Part shown: positions 2,681-63,447 of the stretch, piece by piece
Position numbering within the stretch: the first letter of the stretch is position 1
Layout of the letters: each line of letters starts with the position of its first letter
IMG/VR virus record: IMGVR_UViG_3300050120_000152
Span: 124,001-188,000 of that record
DNA length: 64,000 bases
Direction: 5' to 3' (one strand)
Translations under genes and position numbers: made by a program
Notes under the pieces: model-generated
Database searches by the model: none
Told to the model about the DNA's origin: nothing
Seen by the model: only the letters and a program-made list of their open reading frames with translations

Positions 2681-3325
2681 ATGTATACTGTTTATCAAAC
2701 AACATGTCTTGTGAACTCCAAATTTTATATTGGAGTTCACAAGACAGATGATCCAAATGATGATTATCTCGGATCAGGAAAAGTGCTAAAACGAGCTATC
2801 GAAAAATATGGTGTCTCATCTTTTAAGAAAGAAATATTGCACATATTTGATGAAGCAAGAGAAGCATTCTTGAAGGAACAAGAATTGGTTACTGAAGCTC
2901 TTATAGCAAGTGATTTATGTTATAATTTGAAGCTTGGTGGTCAAGGTGGATGGGAATATAATAATGATGGCTCGGAAGAGCATCGAGAAAGATGCAAAAT
3001 TGGTGCGCTAAAAACTAATCAGATATTAACACCAAATGCTCGCCGTGAACGTAGTCGAAAATCTGCGAACACTAAATGGAAAACCAATTATGATAAAATG
3101 GCAGATATTAATAGAAGAGTATCTAAACAATCTTTAGAATTGAAAATTGGTATATATTCCGAATTAGCTATAGAAAATCGAAAGAGAAAGTTTAAAGAAA
3201 TAAATCATCAATCAGGATCAAAAAATTCAAATTTTGGTACTATGTGGATTACTGATGGAATTTCAAATAAAAAGTTAAAGAACACTGACAACATACCAGA
3301 ATTTTGGTATAAAGGTAGAGTTTAA
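2681..3325 (+). CDS. Seg-like GIY-YIG homing endonuclease
   Basis: VYQTTCLVNSKFYIGVHKT..YLGSG..YNL N-terminal domain; located in tRNA cluster like T4 segB. Confidence 0.85.
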   Translation: MYTVYQTTCLVNSKFYIGVHKTDDPNDDYLGSGKVLKRAIEKYGVSSFKKEILHIFDEAREAFLKEQELVTEALIASDLCYNLKLGGQGGWEYNNDGSEEHRERCKIGALKTNQILTPNARRERSRKSANTKWKTNYDKMADINRRVSKQSLELKIGIYSELAIENRKRKFKEINHQSGSKNSNFGTMWITDGISNKKLKNTDNIPEFWYKGRV

Positions 3326-3593: not shown

Positions 3594-3688
3594 GGAAGAA
3601 TAAGCCGAGTCGGTCTAGCGGTGGCTCATTCGAAATGAGAAGGCCCATGAAAATGGGTGTGAGAGTTCAAGTCTCTCTTCTTCCGCCA
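3594..3688 (+). tRNA. trnS: tRNA-Ser(CGA)
   Basis: GGAAGAA/TTCTTCC, G73, CCA, loop TTCGAAA, long variable arm. Confidence 0.92.
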
Positions 3689-3716: not shown

Positions 3717-3811
3717 GGAAAAGTGTCCGAGAGGCTTATGGTGATATCTTGGAAAGATATTGAGCCAGCTTAAAACTGGCTCCGTGGGTTCGAATCCCTC
3801 CTTTTCCGCCA
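3717..3811 (+). tRNA. trnS: tRNA-Ser(GGA)
   Basis: ATATC-TTGGAAA-GATAT, long variable arm, G73, CCA. Confidence 0.93.
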
Positions 3812-3906
3812 ATTTTAAAACCCGTAGCTGGTCAGGGCTAACGCCACCATCGCTAACACTGGACAATGGGTAACCAGTAGTGTATAATAAGTATTAAATT
3901 TGTAAT

Positions 3907-3999
3907 GGAGAGCCTACCGTATTGGTGAACGGCACGGTCTTGAAAACCGTTTGATCCCTGAAAGGGGGTTTGTGAGTTCGACTCTCACGTTCTCCGCCA
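3907..3999 (+). tRNA. trnS: tRNA-Ser(TGA)
   Basis: ACGGT-CTTGAAA-ACCGT, long variable arm, G73, CCA. Confidence 0.93.
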
Positions 4000-4009
4000 A
4001 TTATAATAT

Positions 4010-4065
4010 GCCTGCCAGTGGCTTACGAGCCACGTTCCATCCGGAGAAGGGTGGGGTGGGCACCA
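4010..4065 (+). ncRNA. D-armless 56-nt tRNA-like RNA
   Basis: GCCTGCC/GGTGGGC-A-CCA; GTGGC-TTACGA-GCCAC; CCATCC-GGAGAA-GGGTGG. Confidence 0.65.
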
Positions 4066-4336
4066 ATTTGATTAACATTAAAATATATTACGGACGATTA
4101 CGAAACGTCTTATATGAAAGTTGCGGATTGTACCCATGTATTGAATAATTCGGCTGTGCACAGTGTCAGAATGAGTAGATACGTATCGCGCCCATTAAAC
4201 ATGGGCAAGGTTGATTGATCATTTTCCATAACGTGGGGTTCTGTTAATCAAAATTTTATTAGCCACCATTTATGAATATGAATGGTGGTTTTTTATTGAG
4301 TTGACACTTTAGTTATACGTGATAATATGACGATAT

Positions 4337-7355: not shown

Positions 7356-7498
7356 GCAGTAATGACGGAATTGGTAGACGTGGCGGACTAAACCGACCTC
7401 TGAAAAGTAGAGAGGATAATCGTTAGATAATGGTGTAAATCGGCTGTCCTAGTTACTAACGTATCGAAGACGTGTAGGTTCAAATCCTACTTATTGCG
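7356..7498 (+). ncRNA. tRNA-Leu-like scaffold with about 58 extra nt replacing the anticodon arm
   Basis: GCAGTAA/TTATTGC, Leu-type D arm GACGGAATTGGTAGACGT, T arm GTAGG-TTCAAAT-CCTAC. Confidence 0.7.
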
Positions 7499-7507
7499 AT
7501 GTTTTAT

Positions 7508-7624
7508 ACGTACATAGCTCAGTCTGGGAGAGCAGCCCCGTAGGAGGGGTAAGTTAAATCAATTTGACGTTTAGGCGTTGCAATGCGATACTGGTCGGTG
7601 GTTCGAATCCATCTGTGCGTACCA
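7508..7624 (+). ncRNA. expanded tRNA-like RNA (Pro-like D arm)
   Basis: ACGTACA/TGTGCGT-A-CCA; GCCCC-GTAGGA-GGGGT; 46-nt two-hairpin variable region; canonical T arm. Confidence 0.7.
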
Positions 7625-7723
7625 AATTTAGGAGAATCCCGGTTCGATTCTGGGAGTGCCATGGGCAATGCACAGTCAACCCCGGCGCTAGATTATACGG
7701 CTAAATCGCCTTTAATAAATCAT

Positions 7724-8434: not shown

Positions 8435-8501
8435 GGTAAGTGCTGGCTGGCTCGGGATCATGACCTGATACAAGTAGGATCGTTCCCTACGCTTACCACC
8501 A
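8435..8501 (+). ncRNA. truncated tRNA-like RNA
   Basis: GGTAAGT/GCTTACC-A-CCA; GTAGG-ATCGTTC-CCTAC; D arm reduced. Confidence 0.55.
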
Positions 8502-28450: not shown

Positions 28451-28540
28451 TGGCGGGAGTAGTGGGAGTCGAACCCACGACGTTTAACATTAAATGCATG
28501 GATTTAGAATCCACCGCTCTGACCACTGAGCTATACTCCC
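28451..28540 (-). tRNA. amber suppressor tRNA (anticodon CTA)
   Basis: GGGAGTA/TACTCCC-G-CCA; GTGGA-TTCTAAA-TCCAT; 19-nt variable region; canonical D and T arms. Confidence 0.88.
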
Positions 28541-41788: not shown

Positions 41789-41863
41789 GGGGAAGTACCT
41801 CAGAGACTAGAGGACTGGCATATGAGCCAGAAGTCGTAGGTTCAATCCCTACCTTCCCCACCA
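41789..41863 (+). ncRNA. tRNA with a 6-nt anticodon loop (AUAUGA)
   Basis: Perfect cloverleaf GGGGAAG/CTTCCCC-A-CCA, but CTGGC-ATATGA-GCCAG. Confidence 0.75.
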
Positions 41864-41866
41864 AAT

Positions 41867-43690
41867 TAAGATGGTGTAAAATCAGCGCAGAGTTGATCAC
41901 CTAGATGATAAGGGCTTACAGAACTGTTATAGGTTCTACACATATCATCCATCTTATAATAAAGCATGTGGATGAGTTTCCCGAAAGGGTTGTGAGTCGC
42001 CAGTCCAGAATTACGAATGGGCCGTTATACTAGACTAACGGAATTACCACTGACGATAATCGTTTGCTACGATTTGAAACATTCTTAGGAATGTATGGTA
42101 TAGCACCTTGAAGGCGAAAGTTTTCATGGTCAGGATAAGGTATCGCAAGATGCTAAAAGGGTTTGCGCCCACAAGCGCCCCACCATAGTAATATGGCCCA
42201 ACTATACAAGCTGGTAGGACACTAAGCGGAATGCTTAGGATTCATCATATGGTGGATATAGATCAGCACTCAATGGTAACGAAAACCACATTAGAGCCAA
42301 TCGGTGAAATGTGAGAGGTTTAGCAGCCTCTAGTTACATGCAACATTGGCCTGAAGTATGTTAAACCGGTAGTGGTTCCAGTATGAGGGTTTGCGCCTAA
42401 ATGCGAAGCTGCAATGTTAATGGGTGCGAACGCTCATGAAACATACTGTGAATGTATCCTTAGCGGGAGAAAAGCAGAGAAGGTCGGGTTTGAAGCTGTC
42501 GGGATGGAGAAAGTTTCATTAATAGCATTTCGCTACACATCCTTTTAGATAAATACATATATCTAGGAGATTGTGAATGAATTTTTGTCATTACGGTTGT
42601 GGAAAAGAAGGTCTGTTCTATTCTGAATCATCAAAGCGTTGGAGATGTTGCAAAAATCCAGCATTATGTGATGGTAGGAAACGTGAAGTCAGTACAATGA
42701 ATATAAATGGAGAGTCCCATAAAAGACTCAAAATGAAGTATAAAAATTGTCCTGAATGTGGGTTGAAGGTATCTGCACCAACATTAGCAGCACATGTACG
42801 TAAATGTACACGAAAACTTACTTGCATAGTATGTGGCAGTGAACATAAGCGTGATCAGGCAATAACATGTTCTGATAAATGTCGTAGTATATTAACTTCT
42901 GAAACAATAAGAGGACAATATGCTGATGGTAGTAGATCACCTAGAAAAGCCAAGAAAACGTCTGTAATATATGACGAACACGTTTTTGATAATGATGTAG
43001 AAGTTCTAGCATACAAATTGTTAGTTTCAATGAAAGTTGACAACTTGCAGCATGAAAGTGTTAGAATTCCATATGTCTATGAAGGATTAGACCATACATA
43101 TTTTCCTGATTTTACTTACGATGATGGTAACCAAAAATGTTTGGTTGAAATCAAAGCTGGTGGTAGAATGAACATGAGCAATTATGCTAAACTGCGCGCC
43201 GCTGAATCGTTAGGATATAAAATCATACTGTGGGATAGAAATGTTATTAAGAAGCTTTCTTCTAATAAAGACTGATGGACAAACGAACCTGCTCGACCTT
43301 AGTGGGTAAACTAGCCTTGATTGGCACTTTGAATATTATCAAAATAACGAAAAATGCAAAGTCAGGTTCGGTTACAGTTGAAAATAGCATAATGCTCCAC
43401 CGAAAGGAATGGAGTCATGCAAAAGCTCGCAAGGCTAATGTATGTTGGTAAAGAACTGCAAGTATGGGTGTAGCCACCCTTAGCTGCTCGCAAGGCAGGC
43501 TGAATGGGAAATGCCGAATAGACTGTAGCGACAATGGAAACGCCACCATTTAAAATAAGGCTGCTATGATGATGTACATATTTGTGGTCGAAAGACTAGA
43601 GTATGTGGACAAGTCGGGAAAAGGCTCGCAAAGCCCTATAATCCGCACGAAAGCATTATCACGAAGAGTGTAATCTCAACTCGACATATT
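41867..43690 (+). ncRNA. giant ornate ncRNA (GOLLD-like), about 1.1 kb, interrupted by an ORF
   Basis: About 680 nt + 410 nt ORF-free, more than 20 hairpins, many with GAAA/GCAA loops; starts directly after a tRNA; ends GAGT-GTAATCTCA-ACTC. Confidence 0.6.
42577..43275 (+). CDS. zinc-finger plus PD-(D/E)xK endonuclease (TnsA-N-like), putative homing endonuclease
   Basis: CxxC motifs; YFPDF..LVEIKAG; ATAAATA and AGGAG upstream. Confidence 0.75.
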   Translation: MNFCHYGCGKEGLFYSESSKRWRCCKNPALCDGRKREVSTMNINGESHKRLKMKYKNCPECGLKVSAPTLAAHVRKCTRKLTCIVCGSEHKRDQAITCSDKCRSILTSETIRGQYADGSRSPRKAKKTSVIYDEHVFDNDVEVLAYKLLVSMKVDNLQHESVRIPYVYEGLDHTYFPDFTYDDGNQKCLVEIKAGGRMNMSNYAKLRAAESLGYKIILWDRNVIKKLSSNKD

Positions 43691-44719
43691 TTTATAGACA
43701 AGTGCATCCAGAAAGGTTATAATTGATTACAAGATCACTTATAGCCTTTTTTCTTTACAAAATTCTTTAAGGAATACTCATGTCAAATGCTGATAATCAT
43801 TTTGCAGAACTGGTCAAGAATTTGAAATCGGATGGGGGTGTCCTCCATTTTAAATTTATTACTAAATGGTATAACAAGTATTATGTTACAGTGAATGCTG
43901 TTACGGTGCATAATTACATTTCTTCATTAGTTGAAGTTATTGGTATATATGTAGACGATAATAAATTCATGTCCATGGGTCAACTGATGAATGCATTATG
44001 CCTACATGGGTATCAAGAAGCCTATCGTCAAAAATTCAAAGATTTATCTGATGAAATGAACGATAGGATGCACTATCGTATTCTGGCTGAATTGTGTGGT
44101 AAACTAGTGTGGACTGAATGGGAGAAAATACCCGGCCATGATACAGTATAAGGAAAATCCTCCACGGTTGACAAAGGATAAAGAATTTGTCGATGAAATG
44201 ACTAACCTACTCACAGAAGCGATCTGTGAGCGGGAAAAGTTACTTGAAACTATCATCATGACAGAGTATCTTAATCCTACGACAGATACTAGGAATGTCA
44301 TGGAAGAGGCATATAGTCTCCTTGAAGAAACGGATATTAATCTGGGTCAACTTGCCGAAGCATTCAAAATCAAAATAATCTACTGAGAGAGTAAACATGT
44401 CGAACATCATAGATTTTACCGCTGTAGTGAAAGATCGTCAGAAATATAAAGATGATATGCTGAATGATATTGGTAACAAAGTTATTGAACTTTTTGGAAA
44501 ACTTCCCACTGTACCATCCACAGATGACGAAGTTATTGAACTTTTTGATACTATTGACACCATTCATGCCTATATCCGTAAACAAGGCTATGACTTTACA
44601 TCCGGTCAAGCATTGGTCGGCCAATTGCTGGAAGCTATGGAAAAGAAAGAACTGAGCTGTTGACAATTAGTTATATGTAATGTATTATATGTCTTTGCTA
44701 ATCACTAAGGCATATCTAC

Positions 44720-45346
44720 ATGAAGCGTTTATGTAATATTGCGGCAGTCCTAAGCCTACTCCTGTTTACATGGCTTGTTGGATCAGCTGTGTTCGATCTA
44801 TTCTTTGTGTTGCCGCGTGTGTCCATTCCATTGGCAATTCCTGCTGCTATTCCCATGGTGCATGAGGATGGTAAACAATTGGATTGCATGGCTCAAAATA
44901 TCTATTGGGAAGCTCAAGGTGAAAAAGCTTTGGGTAAAATCTTTGTAGGTATGGTGGTTATGGAACGGTTGCACTCGCCCCATTTCCCTAGTACAGTGTG
45001 TGGGGTAGTATTCCAAGGCAATCGTGATGCCCATGGCAAATCTATCCGTCATATGTGTTCATTTTCATGGACTTGTGATGGTGCAGATCATGATATAAAC
45101 TTTAACAATATCATTGATCGTCGTGAATGGTTGCTATCCTATTCAATTGCTAAACAGGTATTAGCTGGTAAGGCTCATGTTCCTATTGACATGGTTGGTG
45201 TGACTCACTACCATGCTGATTATGCAAAGCCATTCTGGTCTAAGGATCATAAAGATTATAAACTAGTGGCTACGATAGGTCACCATCTATTCTATCGTTG
45301 GAAAAAAGCCATGATTTCATCAAATGCTACAGTAGCGATGAGGTAA
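44720..45346 (+). CDS. SleB-like cell wall hydrolase
   Basis: CMAQNIYWEAQGE, CSFSWTCDG, THYHADY..P.W, IGHHLFY. Confidence 0.9.
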   Translation: MKRLCNIAAVLSLLLFTWLVGSAVFDLFFVLPRVSIPLAIPAAIPMVHEDGKQLDCMAQNIYWEAQGEKALGKIFVGMVVMERLHSPHFPSTVCGVVFQGNRDAHGKSIRHMCSFSWTCDGADHDINFNNIIDRREWLLSYSIAKQVLAGKAHVPIDMVGVTHYHADYAKPFWSKDHKDYKLVATIGHHLFYRWKKAMISSNATVAMR

Positions 45347-46044
45347 TATGATGACAAGCAAAATTCGCAGAAAATTTCTTTATATTCGGCGTAAGGCCAT
45401 TGCCGAGGGTTTGACTTCCGTGGAATGGTGCTGGCCGAAGGATCATCGTACATTCGTTGTTAGGCTTGGTAAGCAGCACATTGCAGTTTTCTATAATGAG
45501 GCAGAAAGTGAATCAGATGGTGATACCATAAGTGCCATGGATTATACGATGTCAATCATGGTCGAGGTATATTCTTTGAAAAATATCAAGAATTATAATG
45601 CTCTGGCTGCTGCTTATATAAAAGATCATAAAAAAGCTTGACATTCTCCTAATCTAAGATATAATGTATTACATATAGAGAATTACACAATGTCTAACAA
45701 ACTGATTAACACACTGTTTAACGTTCTGATTACTGGTATGATCGAACGATTCGATGATGTAAGTAATGATGCTTACAGTCTGAGTCGATTTGCTGCTGCT
45801 GGCCCCACCTATGATGATCTGTTGAAGTTGATGGAATCCATTGCCGAAAATGCAAATGGTGAAGTGTATGAAGGTTACAGTGGCCGTGGTATGTATGGCG
45901 ATAAATGCTGGGGTATTACTGGTGATGCTGCCAAGATCATTGAAATCGCTGGCGCGCATGGGGTGTTCGGCGCAAATATGGACAGCATGGGTCGTGACAG
46001 TATTGTTTATTGGCCTGCCCTGAAGTATACTGAACAAGATTAAA

Positions 46045-46328
46045 GAATGCGAAACCAAGTGGCTCGACGCCACGCGGATATCCGTCCTTGTGGGTAGGTT
46101 TCGAAGTCAATCGTTAAAAGATGCCTTGTGGTCGCTACATGAGGGATTACCGTTACACAATAGCGGTTGAAAGTCGATTAACGATTGGCGGTACTATAAG
46201 GTCAGATGATAGGTCATCTGACAACTATTGAAGTAGTTGCATGGTTCAGTGCCATGTAATGGGATTGCGGCAGAGAACGGTGAATCCCACATTTGTTGCA
46301 CTTGACCCTGCTTGCAGGGTCTTTTTTA
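46045..46328 (+). ncRNA. candidate multi-hairpin RNA ending in a terminator
   Basis: CGAAACC/GGTTTCG, GTCAATCGTTAA/TTAACGATTGGC, GTCAGATGA/TCATCTGAC, GACCCTGC/GCAGGGTC-T6. Confidence 0.5.
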
Positions 46329-47423
46329 TCCACTATTCAGCTAACTCTGATATAATAATCCCATGATTGTATATCGTGTAGAAAATAATAAAGGTTGTGG
46401 GCCATTCTTTGAAGTATGGAATATCGTGGACAAAAGCATCTATGATGAGCTTTATAAGTATTCAAGATATTTGACCACTCTCCCTTGCCCAACCAAAGCT
46501 ATGGCTCAAGGTAAACATTTTGCTTGTCGATCCTTGGAAGAATTAAGTAAATGGTTTATGTGTGATGAACATTGTGATCTGTTGACTTCTAATGGATTTC
46601 ATATTAGCATATACAATGTAAAAACTGTCCTACGTGGACAAATGCAAATCAGCTTTGTAAAAAAGAATGCAAAGCTGGTTGACACACTTCCCCTCACATC
46701 ACTCCAAGGATTATTACAATGAGCATTGTTTCTGATTTTGTTAAGTGTCTGAATGCTGCACAGAAAAAGAATTGGGTTACTCTGATTGCACATATTCGTA
46801 AGGGCGAATATATTTACAATCATGATAATTATGAAATTGACAAAGCTTATAATAGTAGCCGTTGTGCATTGTCTTTTGCCTATACCTATGACATTCTCCA
46901 TGGTGCCGATGATAGTTCGTTTAATCAGACCATTGAGGAAAGCAGCGAAGCTATTGATGAATTCTTTGGTGAGGATGCCGTGGCTATCGTATTCGAAGGT
47001 GGTAGCACTTTTGGTGAATATCTGAATGAACATACGAATGAAGGTGAAGGCGCTGACCTTGATGGTGAGCATGCTGCCAAATTGCTTTCCGATTTTCTTG
47101 GGTTTGGTGCTGAACACGGCGATGCCAAGTTCGTTACGATTCACTGGAAAAGCAACCAGACTGACAATTTCGAAAGTGTGGAAGCCTTGCAGTCTTTCCT
47201 TGATCTGAACCCCAAACGTGCACAGGGTTATCGTAAGATTACGGTGACGAAGCTTGTACCGCGAACCGTGTATGATGAAGTGGTGGAAACCATCACACTA
47301 TAAAATAAAATGGGGCTTCGGCCCCGTTTTCTATTGCATTATACATATTCTTTGGTATATACTCATTCCATGGTCATTCTTAAACCAGTCCTGCGTTCGC
47401 AGCAGATAACATCCATTCGCAAT

Positions 47424-47741
47424 ATGTCTTTTGAGGCATTGCTGAAGGCACAAGGTCATCTGTGCTTTTATTGCAATCATCATATGCCATTGGATGGTAT
47501 CACTAAAGATCATATGTTTCCTAAATGCCATGGTTTCCATTTGCGTGGTAACATGGTACTGGCACACAAGCGATGCAATGGTAAGAAAGGTAGCCGTTAT
47601 CCCACTACAGCAGAGTTGTTGAAGTGGGTGGCATTGTATACCAACAAGCCTAAGAAGCACTTGATAATCCGTACCAAAAATAATAAACCACGATTCAAGT
47701 TAAAAATTACCGCAGAACTGATCCATGATTTCCTATCGTAA
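47424..47741 (+). CDS. small HNH endonuclease
   Basis: CFYC..TKDHMFPK..GNMVLAHKRCNGKKG. Confidence 0.8.
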   Translation: MSFEALLKAQGHLCFYCNHHMPLDGITKDHMFPKCHGFHLRGNMVLAHKRCNGKKGSRYPTTAELLKWVALYTNKPKKHLIIRTKNNKPRFKLKITAELIHDFLS

Positions 47742-47790
47742 AACGATAGGAGCGAATGCTACCTGTCCTACCGCAAGCGTTAGGACTTAA

Positions 47791-48198
47791 TCAGGTAATG
47801 CGGAATCGTTTAAAAATGGTGGAATTTAGTCTCTCACCATACATTCTCTTATTCGGATAGACTTCACGAATAACTTGAGCTATGCACGATGCATAGCCTT
47901 TCTTTCTTTCAGACTTTTTAGTATAGAAATCGACAATGGTATCCCATTTGCCTTTCCATCCCTGATTTTTATAGACCATAGCCCATGATGCCACTCTACC
48001 ATCGGGTGAACATGCATAAAATACTATGGCATCTTTGAGATAGCAATCTTCAGGGTCTGCATAGTTTAGCAGATTCTCTAACATACGACCATTCCACCGA
48101 TTGTTAAGTTTCAGTAACTGATTGCGAATTACTGAACTAATATCGTTCAACGGTGTATAAAACACATTAACAATTTCTTTACTCATGGATACTTTCAC
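47791..48198 (-). CDS. GNAT-like acetyltransferase
   Basis: FYTKKSERKKGYASCI motif A; paralog of 38501-38905. Confidence 0.6.
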   Translation of the reverse strand: MKVSMSKEIVNVFYTPLNDISSVIRNQLLKLNNRWNGRMLENLLNYADPEDCYLKDAIVFYACSPDGRVASWAMVYKNQGWKGKWDTIVDFYTKKSERKKGYASCIAQVIREVYPNKRMYGERLNSTIFKRFRIT

Positions 48199-48345
48199 AT
48201 TACCTTATCATGATGACAGCCCATCCATTATTTGTCAAGCATCATTTAATTATGAATCAATCCCTAATATGTTACATGTAATGCTTGACATTCTAGTTCC
48301 ATATTCTATAATTCATCTATCGAATCACACAAGGCAACGCCTACT

Positions 48346-49098
48346 ATGTTTTCACCTGTCCAAAACATTCTCTCTGTCGGCAAGGACGCAAAAACCATCA
48401 AAGGAACTAAAAAGGGTGTTATGACAGGCATTCTGTATCTTGCGCCACACCTTTTGTCTGGTTATCAAGTATGCCCGAAAGCTAGTGAAGGTTGCAAGCT
48501 GGCCTGTCTGTATACGGCTGGGCGTGGCGTATATAGCCGTACTCAAAACGGTCGGATCAATAAGACCAAATGGTTTTTTGAGGATCGTGAATCATTCATG
48601 GAAACGTTGGTCAATAACATGGAAGCCTTGATCCGCAAGGCTAACCGCGAAAATATGATCCCTGCTGCGCGATTGAATGGCACCAGTGATATTGCATGGG
48701 AAAAGATTGCTTGTGTGAAGAATGGCATCAAATATGCATCTATCATGGAGGCATATCCCGAAGTCCGCTTTTATGATTATTCTAAAGTGCTTGGTCGTTC
48801 TAAGGCTTTGAAACTCAAGAATTATCATTTGACGTTTTCGTTGTCTGAATCGAATGACAATGATGCTCAAAAAGCTCTTGCACAAGGCTATAACCTTGCA
48901 GTAGTATTACGTCTTGGCAGAACTGAAAAGAAACCTAAAAGGTGGTCAGGTTATCCTGTCGTGAATGGGGATGAAACTGATGTACGGTTCCTTGATCCAA
49001 AACATGGTCATATCATTGCACTGTTTCCGAAAGGTCGTGGTCGAAAGGATACCAGTGGTTTTGTCCGTGAAGTTAACTCAACCCTAAAGGCAGCATAA
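48346..49098 (+). CDS. Gp88-family protein
   Basis: CPKASEGCKLACLYTAGRG, RLNGTSDI.WE, FYDYSK, NYHLTFS. Confidence 0.8.
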   Translation: MFSPVQNILSVGKDAKTIKGTKKGVMTGILYLAPHLLSGYQVCPKASEGCKLACLYTAGRGVYSRTQNGRINKTKWFFEDRESFMETLVNNMEALIRKANRENMIPAARLNGTSDIAWEKIACVKNGIKYASIMEAYPEVRFYDYSKVLGRSKALKLKNYHLTFSLSESNDNDAQKALAQGYNLAVVLRLGRTEKKPKRWSGYPVVNGDETDVRFLDPKHGHIIALFPKGRGRKDTSGFVREVNSTLKAA

Positions 49099-51488
49099 TC
49101 ATGGCTCATAATTTTCGTTATACAGTGCGGCATGAATTTAGCTATGGAGAGGAACAGTATATCTTCGATTCCCCCATTTTGTTGTTAAGGTATTATGATG
49201 ACTTGGAACAGCAATTGGCACTGGCGAAAGTTCTAGGCATCAATTATGAACCAAATCGCGGGGAATACTTGATTATCGAACTGCAACCTAACATTGTGGA
49301 AAAAGTATTGACATTGGATGAAGTCAATACTATTCTTGATGCTGGTCAATAATTTTAACAATCACTAAAACTAAGGAAAAACTATATCATGGCAATCAAA
49401 GCAGTTACTCGTTACCAATCCGAAGATGGAAAGCTTCATGATGATATTGTGGAAGCTCGCTCGTATGATTCCGTTCAACGCGCTTTGACAGGCGTAAAAG
49501 CAGCCATTCTGACCGCATCACCGAATCATATGCTGGGCAATCTCCCGCTTGATCTGGTGAACAATCCGAAGCATGCTGAACTGCTGCGTGATGCTCTGAA
49601 TGCTGTACTGAATAGTCACCGCCACTATGGCAAACTGCGTAAGAATAAGCCTGCGCAGACTGCTACAAAAGTCTGAAATACTGCTTGACAAGCATTAATT
49701 GTTGGAATAAACTTTAAATATCATCATAAAGGCAATCAAATGCACGATTCCACAAATTCTGATTCTATCACCGACTATGCTTCCAATTCGGTAGCAGCTA
49801 CACTTATTTCATCCAAAAATCAAATCCGTCGAATGTATCCCACGGTTTTGCTGGATGAGCATCCTGATGCTATTCTGCCGATCATTTTGGATCGCACCGT
49901 ACATAGCATGATTCATCTGGATCAGAAATTTGATATGAATTCGATTTTCGATCAAGATCATTTCAACAAGATGAAAGCTGAAGCATTTATCCATCTGGCA
50001 TGGCTTAATACGCCGGATAATACGCCATATCCAGAATCATTGAAATACTCCTCCACCAGTGTTTCATCTGATGAAGATGATGAAACCGTTGTAGTAGTTC
50101 CCAAGGTGGCTCCAGCAGCAAAAGTCACAACCGTTGCCGATGTTGCCAAAAATCGCATAATCAGCAAAAATTCAAAGTTCCAAAAAGCATTGCTTATCTA
50201 TACAGAAGATCAGGCCAGCCATGCCAATCGTGCAGCAACATTGCGCCGCATGATTACAGAACTGGAGATGAATCCAAGTACAGCAAATGTGTACTATAGT
50301 AAGTTCAAGAATCCAGTATCACTCCAGAAGTAAAGCTGAAGATAGGCTGAATCAAGTTAAGATTAACTGCACCATCCGAAAATAAGTCTTGCAATTCGTA
50401 ACAAAGCGTGTAGAATGTAAAACACTGGAACGATCCAGTATCACCTAACCCAACACCAACTCACAACAAAGGAAATACGATCATGGCAAAGCGCGAACCT
50501 GCGGTAACTTTCAAGGGCACGATGGCCGAACTGACCAGCAAGCTCACCCTCAACGGCAAGAAGCTCTCCCAGCCGTTTCTCTCCCAGCTTGTCACCTACG
50601 GCTTGTCGGCGTCTGTCGTTGCCAAGCAGCCCAACTCGGTTGGCAAGGGCAAGCCGACCAATATCGTGGAAGTCACCAGCGGCAAGGGTCACATCTTCGC
50701 TGAAATCGTGGCGGATGCGGCGGCTGAGCATGTCGATGCTTCTGCTTCGACCGAAGTGACCGCGTAATACATCTGCTGCAAGAATATCAGAAAGCCCTAG
50801 CCATAGTCTAGGGCTTTCTTTTTGATAAATATATTTCAACGGAGATAGTCTATGTGCCTTGTACGCCTTGATAACCATGTTGAAAGTGTGAACCAGATTA
50901 TTGCAGGGTTGGAAGCGGGAACCCGAACTCTAACCAGTCTGCAAGTCGCTATGCTGCTGCGTGAGCTTGACGAAGCGTTACAGGCATGTCAGGGTAGCCC
51001 TATCCTTACGCATGCGTTAGGACTTAATCCAAGCATGGTAAGCTAACCATAAAGAATATGCATCATTCTGTTACTTTGCTTATTGCAAAGATTTCCTAAA
51101 AGGAATATAATGATTGCACTAGAGGATTCACCATGATTAACCTACTTGTCAAACATGATACTGCCCACAAAGTATGGCACAAGCTCAGTGTAGGCTTTCC
51201 TGACCGTGCTGCATTACCTGATAACATGGAAGGTCTAGCAGGATCATGCTGGCAGTTTGCCATGCAATACGCTATTGACCATCAAATGAACCGTGACCTC
51301 ATTGCATTCCGTATCGTTGACAAGAATGATTCTGTCATCTATGAATACGTTTCAAATGCAACCATGAATGCCGACACTACTGGCATCAAAACCTATCAGC
51401 GTTTCTTAACATCTGTTTAACCTTCCCTTAACAATTCGTAAGGTCACCAGTCCCAACACCATACCATGAAAATCTTTGTTGTCAACAC

Positions 51489-51537
51489 TTGACAATCCAT
51501 TATATATAATGTAAAATAGGGTTGTGGATGGGAAGCA
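51489..51537 (+). promoter_or_regulatory. repeated promoter plus GGA-rich leader (8 copies on both strands)
   Basis: TTGACA-17-TAAAAT-AGGGTTGTGGATGGGAAGCA; copies + 39144, 52510, 61181 (no clear -35); - 54909, 59796, 61970, 63788. Confidence 0.8.
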
Positions 51538-51633
51538 ATCCACTCCATGATGAAAAAGAAATTTGAAAATAATGCTTGACGCTATCCCTGTAATCGCTTA
51601 TAATACTTCCACACCAACCAACGGAGCAAAACA

Positions 51634-52362
51634 ATGCTTGTCAAGATCACAAACAATGGCGAATCCTTCCTTTGCAGCCCGCGTCAGGCTGGCGTGCTGG
51701 AATTGCTGCTTGATAGTAATGCAGGTGGGTTTGCATCGGTCAAGGGCTATGTATCCAGTGAAACGGGCGAAGTGGCAGATTATACCTTCATCAGCCGTTT
51801 CAGCGTAGGCAACATGTATGAGCGTGCTATGGCAGCTCTGGAAACCTTCACAGTGGCTGATATTATCGACAGCATTCGTGACAATCTGAAAGTCAAGGCT
51901 CTGACCACGGATGAACTTTACGAAGCGTTCGATGCTCGCCGTGCGGCTGAAATTGCCAGCAAGGTGCAAACCCTTGAAGGTGACCGCAGTGATGCACGTC
52001 GCCAGTCGCATGATCGTAATTATCATGTGTTGGATCATGGCGTGAAGGTTCATTACGTCACGGAAAAGGTTGACAAGCTGACTTATCCAGTGCTGGAATC
52101 CTATGGCAATGAACGTCTGCCAGTGGTCAAAAGCATCATGTTGAACATTTTGGAAGTGAAAAAGACCGTGACCACGGCAGGCACGTACAAAACCGTGAAC
52201 AGTGGTGTTCCTGTCATCATCGGCAATGCTTTGAACAAGCTGCTGCCGAAAACGGCCAAAATGAAAGTGTTGTCGTTCAAGGATGACAATTTCGATTCTC
52301 TGGCTCTGGCTGGCGTCCAGTACATCCCCGAAGATTTCAAGGGCTTGTATAGCGCAAGCTGA
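51634..52362 (+). CDS. hypothetical protein
   Basis: 242 aa; own promoter and GGAG RBS. Confidence 0.75.
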   Translation: MLVKITNNGESFLCSPRQAGVLELLLDSNAGGFASVKGYVSSETGEVADYTFISRFSVGNMYERAMAALETFTVADIIDSIRDNLKVKALTTDELYEAFDARRAAEIASKVQTLEGDRSDARRQSHDRNYHVLDHGVKVHYVTEKVDKLTYPVLESYGNERLPVVKSIMLNILEVKKTVTTAGTYKTVNSGVPVIIGNALNKLLPKTAKMKVLSFKDDNFDSLALAGVQYIPEDFKGLYSAS

Positions 52363-53361
52363 ACCTGAAAAATAATCCCCATAGGCTAACACTTATGGGG
52401 ATTTTTCTGCTATTGGGAACATGTACCTGCGATGAAATTCCGTTCAAGCCTTATCTAATCAATGGGCAGGGAAACCTGCCCATTCAGCTTACGTTCATAA
52501 TGCATATGGTAAAATAGGGTCGTGGATGGGAAGCATTGCCACGATAAAGTATGTCATGAGATACCTTAAAATGATGCTTGACAATGATTCTAATAATGAT
52601 ACTTTTCTTTATAAGAAAAGACTTGTAATGGATAATTCATTACAGTATGATACTGGCATATCCTACTGGAATATCACGATGAACAGTTCGCATGCTACCA
52701 TCAAGATTCGCATTGGCAACAATGTAATGTTGGATTATAATCCTACCTTCTGCCGTTGGTATCATAGCGACGATGGCTTGACATGGTGGGCATTGCCGAT
52801 CAAGATCAAGCGTGTTGAAACGGCTATTGCATACGTAGCGAATCATTATTATATACTGGCCGAAAACCTGTACAAGTAATGCTTGACAGCCTGCCATAGT
52901 TCTATTAGAATACTTGCATCAACCAAGGGAACGTCAGCATGAACATCAACCATCGCGACAATACCATCATCATCATTTTCGCCCTGCTGGTGCTGGCTGG
53001 CATCTATTTTGAAACCTATCGCTGGTTCAATTGATACTGCTTGACTTTCATGCGAGCTATGTTACAATACTCCCATCATGAAACCCAACGTCGAGATTGA
53101 CTGAATATGTTAATATCAATCGAATCATTTGATATGGTTTCCGCGTTGTATACCGTGAACATTTTCGGTAATCTTTATTATCTTGGGTTTGCCAAGTATG
53201 ACGAGAATGATGTAGAGATTTATGATTATGCCGCTATAAAGTATCAGCCTGATATTAGCAGGGCTATTAGTAGTCAAGCTGAAAACCTTCATGAACAATT
53301 GGATCAAAACAAAAAAGAAATATTGCTTGACTGTTGAACCGATCATCGTTATAATACTCCC

Positions 53362-53484
53362 ATGAAAACGAAAATCAACAATCCGGTAGCGAAGCATTCT
53401 GGCAAATTCAACAAGCCTGCGGTTCATCGTGATCGCAAGAATGATTATCGTCGCCGCGAAAAACATTCAAATAGGGTTGCATAA
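53362..53484 (+). CDS. small basic protein NPVAKH..FNK..VH.DRK..Y.R..KH (40 aa)
   Basis: Not in the ORF track; own promoter; stop overlaps next start. Confidence 0.65.
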   Translation: MKTKINNPVAKHSGKFNKPAVHRDRKNDYRRREKHSNRVA

Positions 53485-56400
53485 TGATTCATAATTCCCG
53501 CAAGTTGCTCAAGAATGAATTACTGAAAAACTATATCAGCATGGTTTCCTATGATCGCGGCCATAGTGCTGGTGAACAGGAAGTAGAAAGTATTGCTAAT
53601 GAAATGGCATATGATCTGCAAAAGGTCGATGATTATATCACAGGTCTGGAACAGCAGTGCTTTCGGTTTCATTGTGCTGGCTGATAATACGGTGAAGAAA
53701 GCTCGAATTTAGCCTTGACAGCTATGGTTTCAAAGAGTAATCTGTAATCTGTTTCGTGAAGTATGATTGTTAAGGATTGGATTAAAAGAGCTACAGAACA
53801 GCCTGCGGGTGTAGCCAACCAATTATGGGCATGAATAGGAATACGGCTATGTAACACTGTCACCCTTGCTATGGGAAGCATTTACTTATAGACTGATAAA
53901 ATTAGAATGCGGTACGTCTGGGCTGTAATCAGACGAAAATCCTCCCGCCAGCTAGGATAAGCCCTTAGCTGGCTCAATTTCAGGAACGCCATCATGATCA
54001 ATCGTCACGAGCAGCAAGGTTATACCATTCTGGAACTGGGCTGGCTGCTTTATGCGGCTTGCTGGATCGTCGGCATCATCGGATGGATTGCCAACATCGT
54101 GGCTTTGTGCCATATGACAATGCCTGTTGACCTCGGTCATGCCAGCATTCTGTTCATTTTGCGCATCATCGGCATTCCAGTCGCACCATTGGGTGCAGTG
54201 TTGGGATTGTTTTTCTAAAAATCCCTTGCAATATGATGCCATTCTGATATAATACCCTTATCAACCACGATAGGGGATTATCATGCGCTACACTCTTCAC
54301 GATGCAAACGGTAACAAGCTGGGTGAATCTGAGACTGCGCAAGGCATCGGCAATATTGCCACACATGGCACGTTTTCATTTGATTCAAATCCGAACCGTT
54401 TTTATCCGTTCACAGTCTATGAACAGGAAAATGGTCATATTGTTGGTCACAATTATGAGTGTGAAACTCATATGACAGAAGCATTGCGTAAGCTAAAATA
54501 AAGCTTGCACTACCAGACAATTCTGTTATAATACTCTCACACCAAATGAAACGGAGTAAAATCATGGCAACTGCAACTCCCACTCCCACCACTGTCCGTC
54601 CACTGTTCACCATCGCTGCGGAGATTCGCAAGGATTGGGGCGCAAAGGTCAGTCCACATGCAAAGCCTTATTTGGATGCTATGGATTCTCTGAACAGAAT
54701 CGGAGACAACTATTATTGTGATACTGGTGTAAGTGTTGTCCTATATTTTCTCGGCAATGCGCAAGGTTGGAGGGGAGAATCTGCCAAGCGTATCAAGGCC
54801 GAACTCAGGGCAATGGCTGACATCAAGTAACAATTTCAGAAAGGTTGTCTCTTGGAACAGGCGTAAAAGCCAGCCGACAAGGTGGCTTTTCCTTTTTGGA
54901 TATTACTGTGCTTCCCATCCACAACCCTATTTTACATTACATATAATGGATTGTCAATAGATATTTTATAAAATAATTGGTGTAATTTACTAAAATATGG
55001 TACTTTGCTATTGCAAAGATGGGCTAAAGCTATTATAATACTTTCATCCCATCGGAGATAGTCATGGCTAAGCGTGTCGATTCCGTTACGATCAATGGCA
55101 AGGTTCATACCAAGGCCAGCATTCGTGCCATGCTTGAGTGCAACGATCAGTGGCTATATCGTGCCATTGTGGCTATCAATGCTTCACAGACTGCCAATGA
55201 GCTTGCTCATGGTGGAACCATCGAAGATAATGGTATTGGCTTCAATGGGGCAGACGGATACATTCTTATGAGCTTTGCGGCACAGTTGAATCGTTGCGGC
55301 CATCTTTCACCAAAGCAGACTATCATTGCTAGAAAAAAGATGGTAAAGTATGCATCACAGTTACTTACCATTGCCCGCGAAAAGGAATCGAAAATCCAAT
55401 GAAACAGCTAGTACTAAATACAGATCAAGGTGTTTTTACTTTTCATACGCATAATAGTGGTGCTTGCACGTTGCATGTCTATCCTGCACTTCAAGCAGAT
55501 GGCGATGATAATGGATTCAGGGCAGCTATGGATGGCGTTGAAAGTTTGTTACTTGCCATGTATTCCGCTGGCATCAATCTGAATACGCCTGAAATAGCTG
55601 AAGCAATCGACACGGCAATTTCCGCCATCGAAAATAATTACTGAAATGGTTGACAGCGCAATTCTATTGCATTAGAATAATCATACAGCAATCAAACAGG
55701 ATTCATTGTGAATACTCTCCCGTCTCTGAAAGCTTTTCAACTTGCCATGATATTCAACCGTTTTGTTATTGACGGTGACACTTATCCGACTGATGCCGAG
55801 TATATCAATGACGAGGATGGTGAACGCATCGTGGTCAGCAATGATTCCGATGAACTGACCTTTATCAAGATCGTTTCCAAGGATGACAGCAATGTATTTG
55901 TGGTCAGCAATGGTTCCGATGACTATACCGTTCAGTTTTTGAGTAGTCAGGCAATCAATCCATTTTCGGAGTAAGTTATGCCATCGTCCAATGTTGCTAT
56001 TTTCATTCTGCTTTCCACCATCCTTTTCGGCGGTTTGTTCCTTGTATGGCAAAAAAGTGATTGGCTGAATTTCGTCATCAAGGCTGGACTTTTCGGCATG
56101 ATGGTGTATGGTATCGTCATTTTGATTACCAAGTAATATGAAACTGTTATTTTGTAATGTCTGTCACGATGTTGTCAAATTGACTTTTGATGGCAGATAT
56201 TGTGCATGTAAAAAATCATGGGGGAAATATCTCCCTGATGGATTATACGCTCAAATCAGTGGAGAAGCTATTCCCATAGGGTTTGCCAATAATACGTTAC
56301 TGGAAGCCTTGTGCAAGCGTCCACAAGCTGGTGATGGATCACGGTTCACGGCCTTTGTCATTCCTCATGTTTGCCCTACTATCGAAACGGTTGAACATAA

Positions 56401-56772
56401 AAACTAAAATAATAGTTGACACCCTGAAACATTCTGTTATAATTACCTCACACCAACCAACAAGGGCAACATCATGAGCAAGTTCGCAGCTTCCATCGTC
56501 AAGGGTACTGGTTTCGTGCTGAATCGTGATGAAGGTCAGCCGTTCTATACGATTTCCAAGACTGGCGCACTGGAAGGAAAGCAGTCGCCGAACATGGGTT
56601 TCGTGTACAAGAATGCCGAGACTGGCGAGTATTCCGTTCATCTGGGTCTGAAGCGTACCGTGGTCGCGGATTTCAACGCTGTCAAAGGTTTCGTCAAGGA
56701 ATCGCTGGCCGCGTAACGCTTGACAGCGTTGCGAGCATTGTATTAGAATGCTCGCAACAAAGAGTTTTGATT

Positions 56773-56890
56773 GGGTTTGTACGCAGATGGCATAGCGGCT
56801 GTACAGTAAGGCCAGTGTGGCAACATTGTTGCCGATTATTATCGAGTTGATCGGTTCTAATCTTCGTGGGTTCGAATCCCTCCCTGCCCA
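56773..56890 (+). ncRNA. expanded tRNA-like RNA (Tyr-like, loop CAGUAAG)
   Basis: D arm CGC/GCG, 50-nt variable region with hairpins, T arm GTGGG-TTCGAAT-CCCTC; weak acceptor stem. Confidence 0.55.
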
Positions 56891-57147
56891 TTCAAAATGC
56901 TTGACATGCACCATTCAAGTTGTATAATAATCACATGGAAAACGAAACCAAACTTGTGATGTGCGATGTGGGCAGCTGCCGTAATGAGTTGCCAATCGAA
57001 CAGATGAACAGTGAATCCAGCAATGGTGAAACATGGTATGCTTGCCCTGATTGTGTGGACAAGGTTCAGAACAGGTCTGGTTATTGTTCGCTCCAATGTC
57101 AATACACGGGATTCTGTGACGATAGTTGCTGAAGTAATGAGTTAATA

Positions 57148-57345
57148 ATGGCGAGTTCTCTGGTGCGAAACCTGTACCAACTAGCCTAGCTGTAGGGCCA
57201 TGCAGGGAATGACTGATCGGGTATGGTAACCCGAACATAGGATAAATGTTAAATAGAAACGGCAGAGTCTTGGGGATTCTGATACGCCTATTGAAGCATC
57301 CTTTAAAAGCATTGATCCCAACATACAGTCAGAGAATTCGACCAT
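57148..57345 (+). ncRNA. candidate structured RNA
   Basis: 11-bp closing stem CGAGTTCTCTG/CAGAGAATTCG; GACTG/CAGTC; TCGGGT/ACCCGA. Confidence 0.5.
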
Positions 57346-57510
57346 TATTAACTTGACAATACTGTTTCATGTTGTATAATGTATTACAACCCCAGAAACT
57401 TTCGGTGGATAATGGGGCAATAAACCGGGCTACTAAGCTGAGTGGTAATTGATAGATCAGGATAAACCTTGCCCTTTGGGCCTGACCGTTGGTTACGAAA
57501 CCGAATATTC

Positions 57511-57657
57511 ACATAGTGAAGCATTCTTAAACGATACTTACACCTATACAAAACAGAACTGTAGGCGACAAGGATAAGCGTTTCCTATCACACGTATGGG
57601 ATTAGAATGTTAGGATAGCGCCTAGCACGTTTGGTAAGCTAGAATGCTTCACTATGT
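57511..57657 (+). ncRNA. candidate RNA closed by a perfect 17-bp inverted repeat
   Basis: ACATAGTGAAGCATTCT / AGAATGCTTCACTATGT. Confidence 0.55.
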
Positions 57658-57703
57658 AAATAATGATTGACAGTACCGTTCCAAGCTGTATAATGTAATT
57701 CAT

Positions 57704-57809
57704 GGGTCGGTAGCTCAGTTGGTAGAGCAGGAGACTTATTCAAGTATCTTCAATGAGGATACTTCTATTAATCTCTTGGTCGCGGGTTCGAACCCCGCCC
57801 GACCCACCA
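57704..57809 (+). tRNA. trnK: tRNA-Lys(TTT) split by a 30-nt insert (57738-57767)
   Basis: Body resembles enterobacterial tRNA-Lys; removing the insert gives 76 nt with loop CTTTTAA. Confidence 0.88.
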
Positions 57810-57901
57810 TTTCAACCGGCTACAATGTACCTCTGCTGCAAGATACCTCTGCGTAAGCAAGTATGGCGCTTAATTTGCAAGTGTGGCGTGCTGGTCTCTA
57901 T

Positions 57902-58183
57902 TCCATCAACAATGAGGTTACCATGAAAAAGCTGCTGATCTTCACCATCGTCGCATTTGCTACACTGACCACGCTGGTAGGCTGTACCGATGCGGAAAAG
58001 GCATCGTGGGGTGCGCTGGGTGATGCTGGGCATATCGTCTGCTACTCTGGCGGCAAGGTGATTTATGAGGGTGATTCTACGGGCAAGATCGCCACGGTGG
58101 ATCATTCCGATGGCTGGGAGTTCAAGGATGCAAACTCGGGCAAGTTTGTCCGCGTATCCGGTCAATGTCTCATCACGAACTGA
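57902..58183 (+). CDS. lipoprotein
   Basis: MKKLLIF..TTLVGC lipobox; GAGG RBS. Confidence 0.75.
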   Translation, partial: SINNEVTMKKLLIFTIVAFATLTTLVGCTDAEKASWGALGDAGHIVCYSGGKVIYEGDSTGKIATVDHSDGWEFKDANSGKFVRVSGQCLITN

Positions 58184-58676
58184 CAAGGTTTCATCCCTGA
58201 TACAACAACCGGGAATGTAAGGATACTATAATTTTCGGAATATGTCAAGATGCTCATACCATCCGCTGACGTAAGTTATCAGGACTTTTTGTGATATACC
58301 CTTGTGAAGCCGTGGTGTACTGGTTTAGGGTATATTGCAAAAAGGTGTTGACAAGCTGCAATGGTGTTGTATAATACAATTACACAATCGAGAGCTTTAG
58401 CGGTAACAGAATCGACTGTGGGGATGTGCACGGAGCGGCAACGTGTTCACGTTGTGATGTGATAAGGATATAGGACAGTAGGATAACAGAATAAACCCTG
58501 ATTGATTCGCGAGTCAACATGAATAAACCTGTTAGAGTATTGTTACAATCTGAATCATATTGTGGGTTCGAATCCCACCATCCTCCTCGCTAAAGGTAGC
58601 CATTCTGATGAATGGAGAAAATAACACGAGGCACATATGCGCGCCTACTCGATTAACCATCATTTGGCAAAAAGAG

Positions 58677-63110: not shown

Positions 63111-63447
63111 AAAGCTTGCTACTAGCATGTGACAATGTTATAATAATCCCATCATTCAAGGGAAACCCCATCATGTCGAAAGCATACCGTTTTGAAGTGA
63201 TCCCCCATATGGTTTGGAAACATGCCCTTACTGGTGCACAGGCTTCTATCTATGGTGCGTCTCCGCAGGGTGATGATTGGTCTATTGTGGAAGATGGTTT
63301 TACCTTCCGTGACAATCGTTACAATACGGTGGGCAGCTATGGTGTTCGTGATCGGCGCACTGTCGAGGAAATCGAAGGATACCTTACCACGCAATATGGT
63401 TTCGATTGGCGCTTGCAGCATGCACAGTGATAGGGTATAATAATACC

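Follow-up and report, generated by a model that had tools for sequence, protein, structure and literature searches.

A candidate 56-nt mimic of the tRNA acceptor end, without an anticodon loop, in a tRNA operon of a huge phage

Sequence reading and folding confirmed a tRNA-like structure of 56 nt on the plus strand of a phage genome, at positions 4010-4065 of the window, which is the whole stretch of 64,000 nt analysed here. The window corresponds to bases 124001-188000 of a virus record of 340,344 bp with direct terminal repeats, originating from peat metagenomes. The element contains no anticodon loop, and the RNA is therefore a tRNA mimic and not a shrunken working tRNA. That it represents the gene for a small non-coding RNA, which copies the acceptor end of tRNA and does not take part in decoding, is the interpretation we favour, with a probability of roughly 0.5. 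The same sequence was found without a single difference on a second, independent contig from another peat metagenome study, and the element is thus not an assembly artefact. All DNA contigs with the element are identical, so there are no sequence variants among the copies.

Applied to the whole genome, ARAGORN detected 39 tRNA genes, 34 of them with an encoded CCA, and one permuted tmRNA gene. The phage also specifies an enzyme of the CCA-adding type, encoded at genome 77544-77903. No gene for RtcB was found in its genome. Other odd or fragmentary tRNA-like sequences are present in the genome, for example at 7470-7660 and 8435-8501 of the window. The features in and around the element are listed in Table 1.

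Table 1. Features of the 56-nt element, its surroundings and its 50-nt analogue. Positions refer to the window unless another reference is given.
Feature	Position	Strand	Description	Basis
Permuted tmRNA gene	genome 89769-90200		away from the 56-nt element	ARAGORN
Canonical tRNA-Arg(ACG) gene	genome 111827-111906			ARAGORN
GIY-YIG homing endonuclease gene	2681-3325		near the 56-nt element	
tRNA-Ser(CGA)	3594-3688	+	upstream of the 56-nt element	ARAGORN, Rfam
tRNA-Ser(GGA)	3717-3811	+	upstream of the 56-nt element	ARAGORN, Rfam
Putative sigma-70-like promoter	3860-3888	+	TGGACA, 17-nt spacer, TATAAT; 11/12 matches	consensus scan
tRNA-Ser(UGA)	3907-3999	+	ends 10 nt 5' of the 56-nt element	ARAGORN, Rfam
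Spacer/5' leader	4000-4009	+	AU-rich, 10 nt, ending in U(-1); predicted RNase P site before G4010	
Acceptor-like stem, 5' strand	4010-4016	+	GCCUGCC; pairs with 4055-4061 (7 bp)	
Lone unpaired A	4017	+	replaces U8-N9 and the D arm	sequence and fold
Hairpin 1	4018-4033	+	6 bp; UACG (UNCG-type) tetraloop 4024-4027	MFE/centroid fold
Junction	4034-4036	+	GUU	fold
Hairpin 2	4037-4054	+	T-arm position; 6 bp (one G.U); loop GGAGAA 4043-4048	fold
Acceptor-like stem, 3' strand	4055-4061	+	GGUGGGC	sequence and fold
Discriminator and CCA	4062-4065	+	A73 (A4062); genomically encoded CCA (4063-4065)	sequence
Intrinsic-terminator-like hairpin	4261-4297	+	13 bp and T run; ends the putative transcription unit	
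50-nt analogue	L028 9758-9807 (bases 129158-129207 of a 223.5-kb IMG/VR contig, 53% GC)	tRNA strand		descriptor scan
50-nt analogue in relative G009	L111 5621-5670		1 nt after one tRNA-like gene, 5 nt before another	

At the acceptor end, the structure agrees with an earlier sequence-only reading. A stem of 7 bp, A73 and an encoded CCA are all present in sequence and fold, and the D arm is absent, its place being taken by the single unpaired A4017. Two pairs of the acceptor-like stem are of the G.U type (U4013.G4058 and G4014.U4057). The descriptions of the two hairpins hold in part. The first had been called anticodon-like with a loop UUACGA; a hairpin exists, but its loop is really a UACG tetraloop closed by a U-A pair. 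The second had been called T-like, and the GGAGAA loop is indeed found at the position of the T arm, but the stem has 6 bp and the T-loop motif is absent. Hairpin 2 directly adjoins the 3' acceptor strand. Judged from this adjacency, its loop may represent a GAGA tetraloop of the GNRA type that is closed by a G.A pair, and the acceptor stem and hairpin 2 can be modelled as a coaxial stack of 13 bp (7 + 6) with a GNRA-like cap. The overall shape obtained by folding is a three-way junction, from which the UNCG-capped hairpin 1 projects sideways.

All 19 base pairs of the element are intact, and its MFE structure is identical to the centroid structure. The calculated dG is -29.9 kcal/mol, this structure accounts for 82% of the ensemble, and the z score against dinucleotide shuffles is -3.05. 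No other 56-nt window on either strand of the whole genome is as stable. The GC content of the element is 0.66 compared to about 35% in the part of the genome around it. Its reverse complement reaches only -17.4 kcal/mol (z = +0.18), no better than shuffled sequences; the three G.U pairs are valid on the plus strand only and turn into A-C mismatches on the opposite one. Stability rank, strand asymmetry and GC content speak for selection acting on the structure of the RNA strand. These values bear on the notion that the element acts at the DNA level, as a site for recombination, an endonuclease or replication, or that it is a GC-rich palindrome arisen by chance. The GIY-YIG homing endonuclease gene nearby would suit such a notion, but the strongly strand-asymmetric folding with G.U pairs, the CCA, flanks of the tRNA type and the top rank in stability render it barely credible. 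A 7-bp stem followed by NCCA is by itself common, occurring 420-443 times per strand versus about 250 times in shuffled sequence, and the weight therefore rests on the internal structure and the context. Two other identities were rejected. The element is not an intrinsic terminator, since it has no U run, ACCA being followed by AUUUGAUU, and the terminator-like site of the region is located further downstream. A coding sequence was also dismissed, as the 65-aa ORF at 3951-4148 overlaps a tRNA gene.

With an acceptor stem, CCA, two hairpins roughly in the right order and the letters ACG in hairpin 1, the element had been taken for a true D-armless mini-tRNA decoding Arg via ACG. This is extremely unlikely. 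Beyond the 7-bp acceptor, the discriminator and the CCA end, the hallmarks of a tRNA are missing: there is neither an anticodon stem of 5 bp with a 7-nt loop (U33, anticodon at 34-36), nor a T arm (5 bp plus a 7-nt loop of the GTTCRANY type), nor a D arm. The hairpin loops comprise 4 and 6 nt, and that of hairpin 1 could be counted as 6 nt at most. An anticodon in an opened 8-nt loop was considered as well and rejected, because it costs one C-G and one U-A pair of a very stable hairpin. No Rfam family matched the element, and no tRNA was reported there even at E <= 10 in searches with 4.5 kb and with 86 nt; the threshold of 29 bits for membership in the tRNA covariance model RF00005 was not reached. 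ARAGORN predicted 0 genes at the element in its bacterial, metazoan-mitochondrial (-mt, -mtx) and low-threshold modes. The genome, in addition, carries a canonical tRNA-Arg(ACG) gene elsewhere. Charging of the element by ArgRS is unlikely, because ACG is enclosed in a tetraloop, a D loop is missing and the canonical tRNA is already available.

The proposed likeness to armless mitochondrial tRNAs, or to a working mini-tRNA in general, is not supported in view of the 4-nt UACG loop, the absence of a T-loop motif and the silence of Rfam and ARAGORN; an armless or D-armless tRNA of the mitochondrial type would have retained its anticodon arm and was not reported in the -mt and -mtx modes. Three further possibilities were discarded. 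A tmRNA tRNA-like domain does not apply, as the third pair is C3:G70 and not G3:U70, a T loop is absent and no member of the tmRNA clan matched. For a mimic similar to the Y RNA-like YrlA (RF02553), the covariance model gave no match on the element. Finally, a recent deletion copy of a tRNA from the same genome is not indicated, the best local alignment score being 18 versus a mean shuffle maximum of 18.2.

The flanks of the element resemble those of tRNA genes. Its distance to tRNA-Ser(UGA) is similar to the spacing of tandem tRNAs in the same genome. Scored with a matrix derived from the regions flanking the 34 CCA-encoding tRNA genes of the phage, the 12 nt upstream of the element belong to the top 0.56% and the 8 nt downstream to the top 4.7% of genome positions, and the local tRNA-gene signature is matched by '..UAU' before G1 and 'AUU' after CCA. 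From its sequence, the promoter-like site would drive tRNA-Ser(UGA) together with the element, and both may be transcribed as one unit. RNase P would then be expected to cut in front of G4010, the substrate features being U(-1), G1:C72 and the RCCA tail, and the 3' end would probably be trimmed to the encoded CCA, as in the processing of tRNAs.

These features could also be explained if the fold served no other purpose than to attract RNase P and the enzymes that trim 3' ends. Such a processing or punctuation element might free the correct 3' end of tRNA-Ser(UGA), set the 5' end of an RNA covering 4066-4290 or protect the operon from 3' exonucleases, and the 56-mer released in this way would be a side product, comparable to mascRNA in the case of MALAT1. 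The element closes the series of tRNA-shaped units in the operon, with 10 nt between it and tRNA-Ser(UGA) and about 195 nt to the terminator-like hairpin, and every feature of an RNase P substrate is present, in line with this explanation. On the other side, the extra-stable tetraloop caps and the top rank in stability suggest a long-lived product, and overall a role restricted to processing appears unlikely; the analogue described below adds to this judgement.

The search for relatives in other phages gave no sequence homologue, but it did uncover a 50-nt element of look-alike architecture within a cluster of tRNA genes in a 223-kb phage from an unrelated lineage. Comparison of the region with 50,697 phage records from GenBank by megablast and blastn yielded matches to tRNA-Ser only. 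Exact halves of the element were absent from IMG/VR (24-mers) and from JGI metagenome contigs (23-mers). A pattern with fixed loops, junctions and ACCA and free stems gave 0 matches in IMG/VR and 0 in GTDB genomes; its one match in a metagenome contig was rejected as a chance hit, being unpaired and located before the start codon of an ORF. A pattern derived from the 3' end of tRNA-Ser(UGA) also had 0 matches. With a covariance model built from the single sequence of the element (R1), no paralogue was detected in its own genome and nothing in 13 other phage records, two weak matches being discarded as unstructured. Synteny did not help either. The 214-aa ORF is a mobile GIY-YIG gene and was uninformative, the 166-aa ORF had no relatives, and the 230-aa ORF led to tRNA-rich contigs in which the 56-nt element is missing. 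The lack of near-identical copies means little, since the searched collections may leave out records closely matching the source genome.

The 50-nt analogue was obtained by a descriptor scan for strongly folding sequences of 38-72 nt with a 7-bp stem followed by NCCA. From 5' to 3', it consists of the 5' strand of a 7-bp acceptor, an AGAG junction, a 4-bp hairpin with a GCAA loop, a 6-bp hairpin, again with a GCAA loop, adjoining the 3' acceptor strand, and A-CCA. Its dG is -28.8 with a z score of -4.36, compared to a z score of -1.15 for the opposite strand. It resides in a same-strand cluster of tRNA-like genes, among them a 91-nt gene in which a GCAA-capped hairpin replaces the anticodon loop, a 150-nt gene, a tRNA with a CUA anticodon and a tRNA with an 8-nt anticodon loop. 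A second record carries an identical copy. In a diverged relative, the analogue shows one change, which converts a GCAA loop to GUAA and preserves the GNRA type; the RNA module around it is 95-97% identical, while the remainder is rearranged. In G009, the genes on both sides of the analogue are themselves RNase P-type substrates, so that punctuation would be unnecessary there, which makes a mere processing role of such elements less likely.

Both the 56-nt element and the 50-nt element of G005 and G009 can be described as mini three-way junctions, defined by a 7-bp acceptor with A-CCA, a 5' tetraloop hairpin, a 6-bp 3' hairpin adjoining the 3' acceptor strand, a length of 50-56 nt and a location no more than 300 nt away from tRNA genes of the same strand. 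They have in common the stack of 13 bp, A73-CCA, stable loop caps, a side hairpin and the location in a tRNA cluster. The two phage lineages are effectively unrelated, since the 223.5-kb phage shares only nine ORFs with the source phage, at 25-39% identity and leaving a mobile endonuclease aside. Model R1 misses the 50-nt analogue; the likeness is one of architecture only and may be due to convergence or coincidence. An alignment of the two elements with MAFFT was not sensible, and no joint model was built for this reason. In the two records with the analogue, both of them incomplete, no CCA-adding enzyme was found. A general link between the mini elements and a phage CCA-adding enzyme was accordingly rejected, as it holds for the source genome only.

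Elements of this type are rare. In 1.46 Mb with 675 tRNAs, a scan limited to the tRNA strand and to a distance of 300 nt from a tRNA, with a cut-off of <= -0.5 for the mfe per nt, returned only the mini elements and one CCA-ended hairpin of 65 nt; at this cut-off, the opposite strand gave 0 candidates. XacN1, covered from 1 to 50 kb, and 320 kb of tRNA clusters taken from five complete huge phages contained no clear further example.

The element could be a neutral relic, that is, a tRNA gene or cassette that was shrunk by internal deletions and owes its continued presence only to its young age or to hitch-hiking in the operon. The absence of sequence homologues from the databases searched and the several odd or fragmentary tRNA-like sequences elsewhere in the genome would be compatible with such an origin. 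It is nevertheless quite unlikely. None of the 19 base pairs is broken, both loops form stable caps and the element ranks as the most stable window of its genome; no residual similarity to a tRNA, a T loop or a D loop is left, and the same design is maintained in another phage lineage.

Acceptor-end mimicry is favoured, because only the acceptor stem and ACCA have remained specific for tRNA. Minihelices are known substrates of some synthetases, and with its complete acceptor stem and A73-CCA the element might be charged by a synthetase reading this stem only, for a role outside decoding as an aminoacyl donor or by binding EF-Tu or a synthetase. This seems highly doubtful, considering that G3:U70 (Ala) and G-1 (His) are absent, that A73 differs from G73 of the neighbouring Ser tRNAs, that the phage has no gene for a class IIb synthetase and that the stack has 13 bp instead of the 12 bp in elongator tRNAs.

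As for the function of an acceptor-end mimic, both loops are structural caps, which leaves the acceptor stem and the ACCA tail as the surface for a partner. The RNA may act as a decoy or competing substrate for factors reading the CCA tail and the first acceptor pairs. This is possible with the odds clearly against it; a decoy role is pure inference and would require an abundant RNA. Candidate targets would be antiphage toxins of the host directed at tRNA 3' ends, which they modify or cut, for instance toxSAS pyrophosphokinases or nucleotidyltransferases of the MenT/AbiEii type, and a decoy would spare the real tRNAs of both phage and host. For the antiphage toxSAS FaRel2, recognition involves CCA and the first five acceptor pairs, and a synthetic minihelix serves as a substrate for pyrophosphorylation (doi 10.1101/2024.07.05.602228). 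MenT/AbiEii-type nucleotidyltransferases (MenT toxins) target tRNA acceptor ends (PMC10435456, PMC7450476). The CCA-adding-type enzyme of the source phage fits with pressure on tRNA 3' ends. More broadly, the 56-nt and 50-nt elements might be members of an unrecognised class of minimal, CCA-tailed and anticodon-less mimics in tRNA operons of huge phages, serving as decoys against immunity aimed at tRNA 3' ends, such as toxSAS, toxins of the MenT/AbiE type and acceptor-stem nucleases. This wider proposal is speculative and rather unlikely.

The purpose of phage tRNA genes, like the role of the tRNA-like stable RNAs in T4 and T5, has remained a question for decades. The 56-nt element reduces the problem, since its recognisable surface is confined to the acceptor stem and CCA tail, and whatever binds the RNA must read that end. 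The 56-mer is small enough to be synthesised and could serve as a probe for RNase P, the CCA-adding enzyme, synthetases, EF-Tu and the rising number of antiphage toxins acting on tRNA 3' ends. Should it prove to be a decoy, phages would have an RNA-based counter-defence besides their known supply of replacement tRNAs. Should it do no more than signal processing, bacterial viruses would offer a counterpart to the tRNA-like signals at the 3' ends of long non-coding RNAs in eukaryotes.

Several known RNAs share single properties with the element. Synthetic minihelices, which are substrates of RNase P, the CCA-adding enzyme and some synthetases, likewise have their acceptor stem stacked on a T stem, with a loop or tetraloop as the cap and an RCCA tail. 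They are, however, laboratory constructs with a stack of 12 bp and no side hairpin, whereas the element is natural, with a 13-bp stack and an extra hairpin. RNAs of the mascRNA type (MALAT1/MEN-beta) and the tRNA-like RNAs of gammaherpesviruses are non-decoding, processed by tRNA enzymes and CCA-ended. In contrast to the element, they come from eukaryotes or viruses of eukaryotes, fold as cloverleaves with four arms and about 60-72 nt, and receive their CCA post-transcriptionally. Armless and D-armless mitochondrial tRNAs resemble it in small size and loss of the D arm, but their anticodon arm persists, with a stem of 5 bp and a loop of 7 nt, and they decode. The tRNA-like domain of tmRNA also lacks an anticodon and has, besides an acceptor stem and CCA, a D region that is reduced, but unlike the element it has G3:U70 and a true T arm.

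The nearest known relatives in a functional sense, as distinct from a homologous family, are the stable RNAs of the T4 and T5 tRNA clusters. Like them, the element lies on the tRNA strand inside a phage tRNA cluster, and the earlier remark that such an RNA is unexpected in a phage is correct in part only, because these clusters already encode tRNA-like stable RNAs. Within the scope of the searches, made with the surrounding region in the phage collection (matches to tRNA-Ser only) and in Rfam (no family for the element), no homology emerged. Both clusters contain homing endonuclease genes, as does the window. In T5, stable RNAs are encoded on the tRNA strand within the tRNA region, among homing endonuclease genes; RNA1, RNA2 and RNA3 are annotated as tRNA-like with unknown functions, and RNAI and RNAIII are also present. 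In the folds of RNA3 (73 nt) and RNAI, a terminal stem precedes ACCA and GCCA, respectively, and RNA1 comes after tRNA-Ser(GGA) and tRNA-Ser(UGA), much like the 56-nt element. The T5 RNAs differ in size (73-144 nt), and some keep a T arm, while both loops of the element are stable caps. In T4, the species 1 and species 2 RNAs (rnaC and rnaD) are small and stable and located at the end of the tRNA cluster beside the GIY-YIG gene segB. Their roles are unknown, and rnaC retains a T arm (PMC3014915). They are 139 and 119 nt long, and a 7-bp stem with an encoded CCA is not seen at their annotated ends. Compared to the T4 and T5 RNAs, the element is far smaller and has lost every loop motif. What would be new here is a minimal, anticodon-less and CCA-encoded variant of the tRNA-like stable RNAs of the T4/T5 type.

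Besides the reported 56-nt anticodon-less element (window 4010-4065), further unusual tRNAs and tRNA-like genes are present in the window and in other viral contigs (see the table). Among these, the 67-nt gene at 8435-8501 is a better candidate for a real reduced-D-arm tRNA than the 56-nt element itself. It is bordered by sequences typical of tRNAs (..AAUAU on the 5' side, CCA AUUU on the 3' side), and a 7-bp acceptor stem is followed by A73-CCA. The D arm has shrunk to about 3 bp with a 4-nt loop, while the anticodon arm consists of a 5-bp stem and a 7-nt loop, AUCAUGA, with CAU as the anticodon. The T loop, AUCGUUC, is atypical. This gene was neither called by ARAGORN nor matched in Rfam.

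The 117-nt gene of the window carries a 6-nt loop in the 'anticodon' position and an extra region of about 40 nt. Its D and T arms match those of the 91-nt odd tRNA-like genes found in G005 and G009, phages unrelated to this one, and stray T-arm-like pieces lie directly 5' and 3' of the gene. The CUA tRNA of the window would be an amber suppressor. Over most of the window the GC content is about 35%, but it reaches 40-45% in the final third (about 44000-64000), which suggests that this region is of different origin or function.

Genes of reduced appearance were also seen in other viral contigs. In the tRNA-Gly-like genes of L106, L117 and L067, which adjoin normal tRNAs, the D arm is tiny and the 'anticodon' hairpin is long, ending in a 5-nt loop; these genes look like a further family of reduced tRNA-like genes.

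Additional RNAs surround the 50-nt analogue of the 56-nt element in L028, a stretch of an unrelated phage contig, and in L111, a stretch of its diverged relative G009. In the 91-nt gene, a GCAA-capped hairpin takes the place of the anticodon loop. Acceptor pairs 2 and 3 and the inserted hairpin differ between the L028 and L111 copies by compensatory changes, which points to a selected, non-decoding tRNA-like RNA. The 150-nt RNA of both stretches and the 65-nt hairpin of L111 matched no Rfam family. In L028, the CUA tRNA and the adjoining tRNA, whose 8-nt anticodon loop is read as 'ctag' by ARAGORN, raise the question of whether stop-codon or four-base decoding might occur in this phage.

Features detected in the window, elsewhere in the phage genome and in other viral contigs
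Feature	Location	Strand	Remarks
CCA-adding/poly(A) polymerase family enzyme	genome 77544-77903		404-aa open frame; outside window
Permuted (two-piece type) tmRNA gene	genome 89769-90200		outside window
GIY-YIG (SegE-like) homing endonuclease gene	window 2681-3325	+	between tRNA-Gly pair and tRNA-Ser genes
tRNA-Ser(UGA)	window 3907-3999	+	adjoins 56-nt element
tRNA-like gene, 117 nt	window 7508-7624 (within 7470-7660)	+	normal D and T arms
tRNA-like gene, 67 nt	window 8435-8501	+	flanks and arm anatomy
tRNA, CUA anticodon, 90 nt	window 28451-28540	-	tRNA-Pyl by ARAGORN
tRNA, abnormal anticodon loop	window 41789-41863	+	ARAGORN '???', 'at'
90-nt structure	window 41913-42002	+	7-bp stem and GCCA; 50 nt 3' of preceding tRNA; no ARAGORN call
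tRNA-Gly-like genes, 67-68 nt	L106 6460-6527; L117 4181-4248; L067 5778-5844	L067: -	GCGGA... start, U73-CCA
tRNA-like gene, 91 nt	L028 9624-9714; L111 5529-5619		Rfam tRNA, 54-57 bits
150-nt RNA	L028 9813-9962; L111 5676-5825		acceptor stem, T arm, ACCA; directly 3' of 50-nt analogue
65-nt GCAA-capped hairpin	L111 5834-5898		ends GCCA; 3' of 150-nt RNA
CUA-anticodon tRNA (amber suppressor type) and adjoining tRNA with 8-nt anticodon loop	L028 9985-10143

The tRNA-Ser(UGA) gene scored 54.9 bits on the Rfam tRNA-Sec model (cut-off 47) because of its long variable arm; a tRNA-Sec identity was rejected, the anticodon being UGA (serine) and not UCA. The hairpin 2 loop of the 56-nt element, GGAGAA (4043-4048), is complementary to UUCUCC (3990-3995) in the 3' acceptor strand of this tRNA. 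The loop is similar, too, to the 5' acceptor strands with which the Ser tRNAs begin (GGAGAG or GGAAGA). Both may be coincidence, since the 50-nt analogue has no counterpart to either. Other huge phages carry relatives of the homing endonuclease gene preceding the tRNA-Ser genes within their tRNA arrays, and the position of the gene in the window parallels that of segB in the tRNA cluster of T4 and of the HNH genes in the tRNA region of T5.
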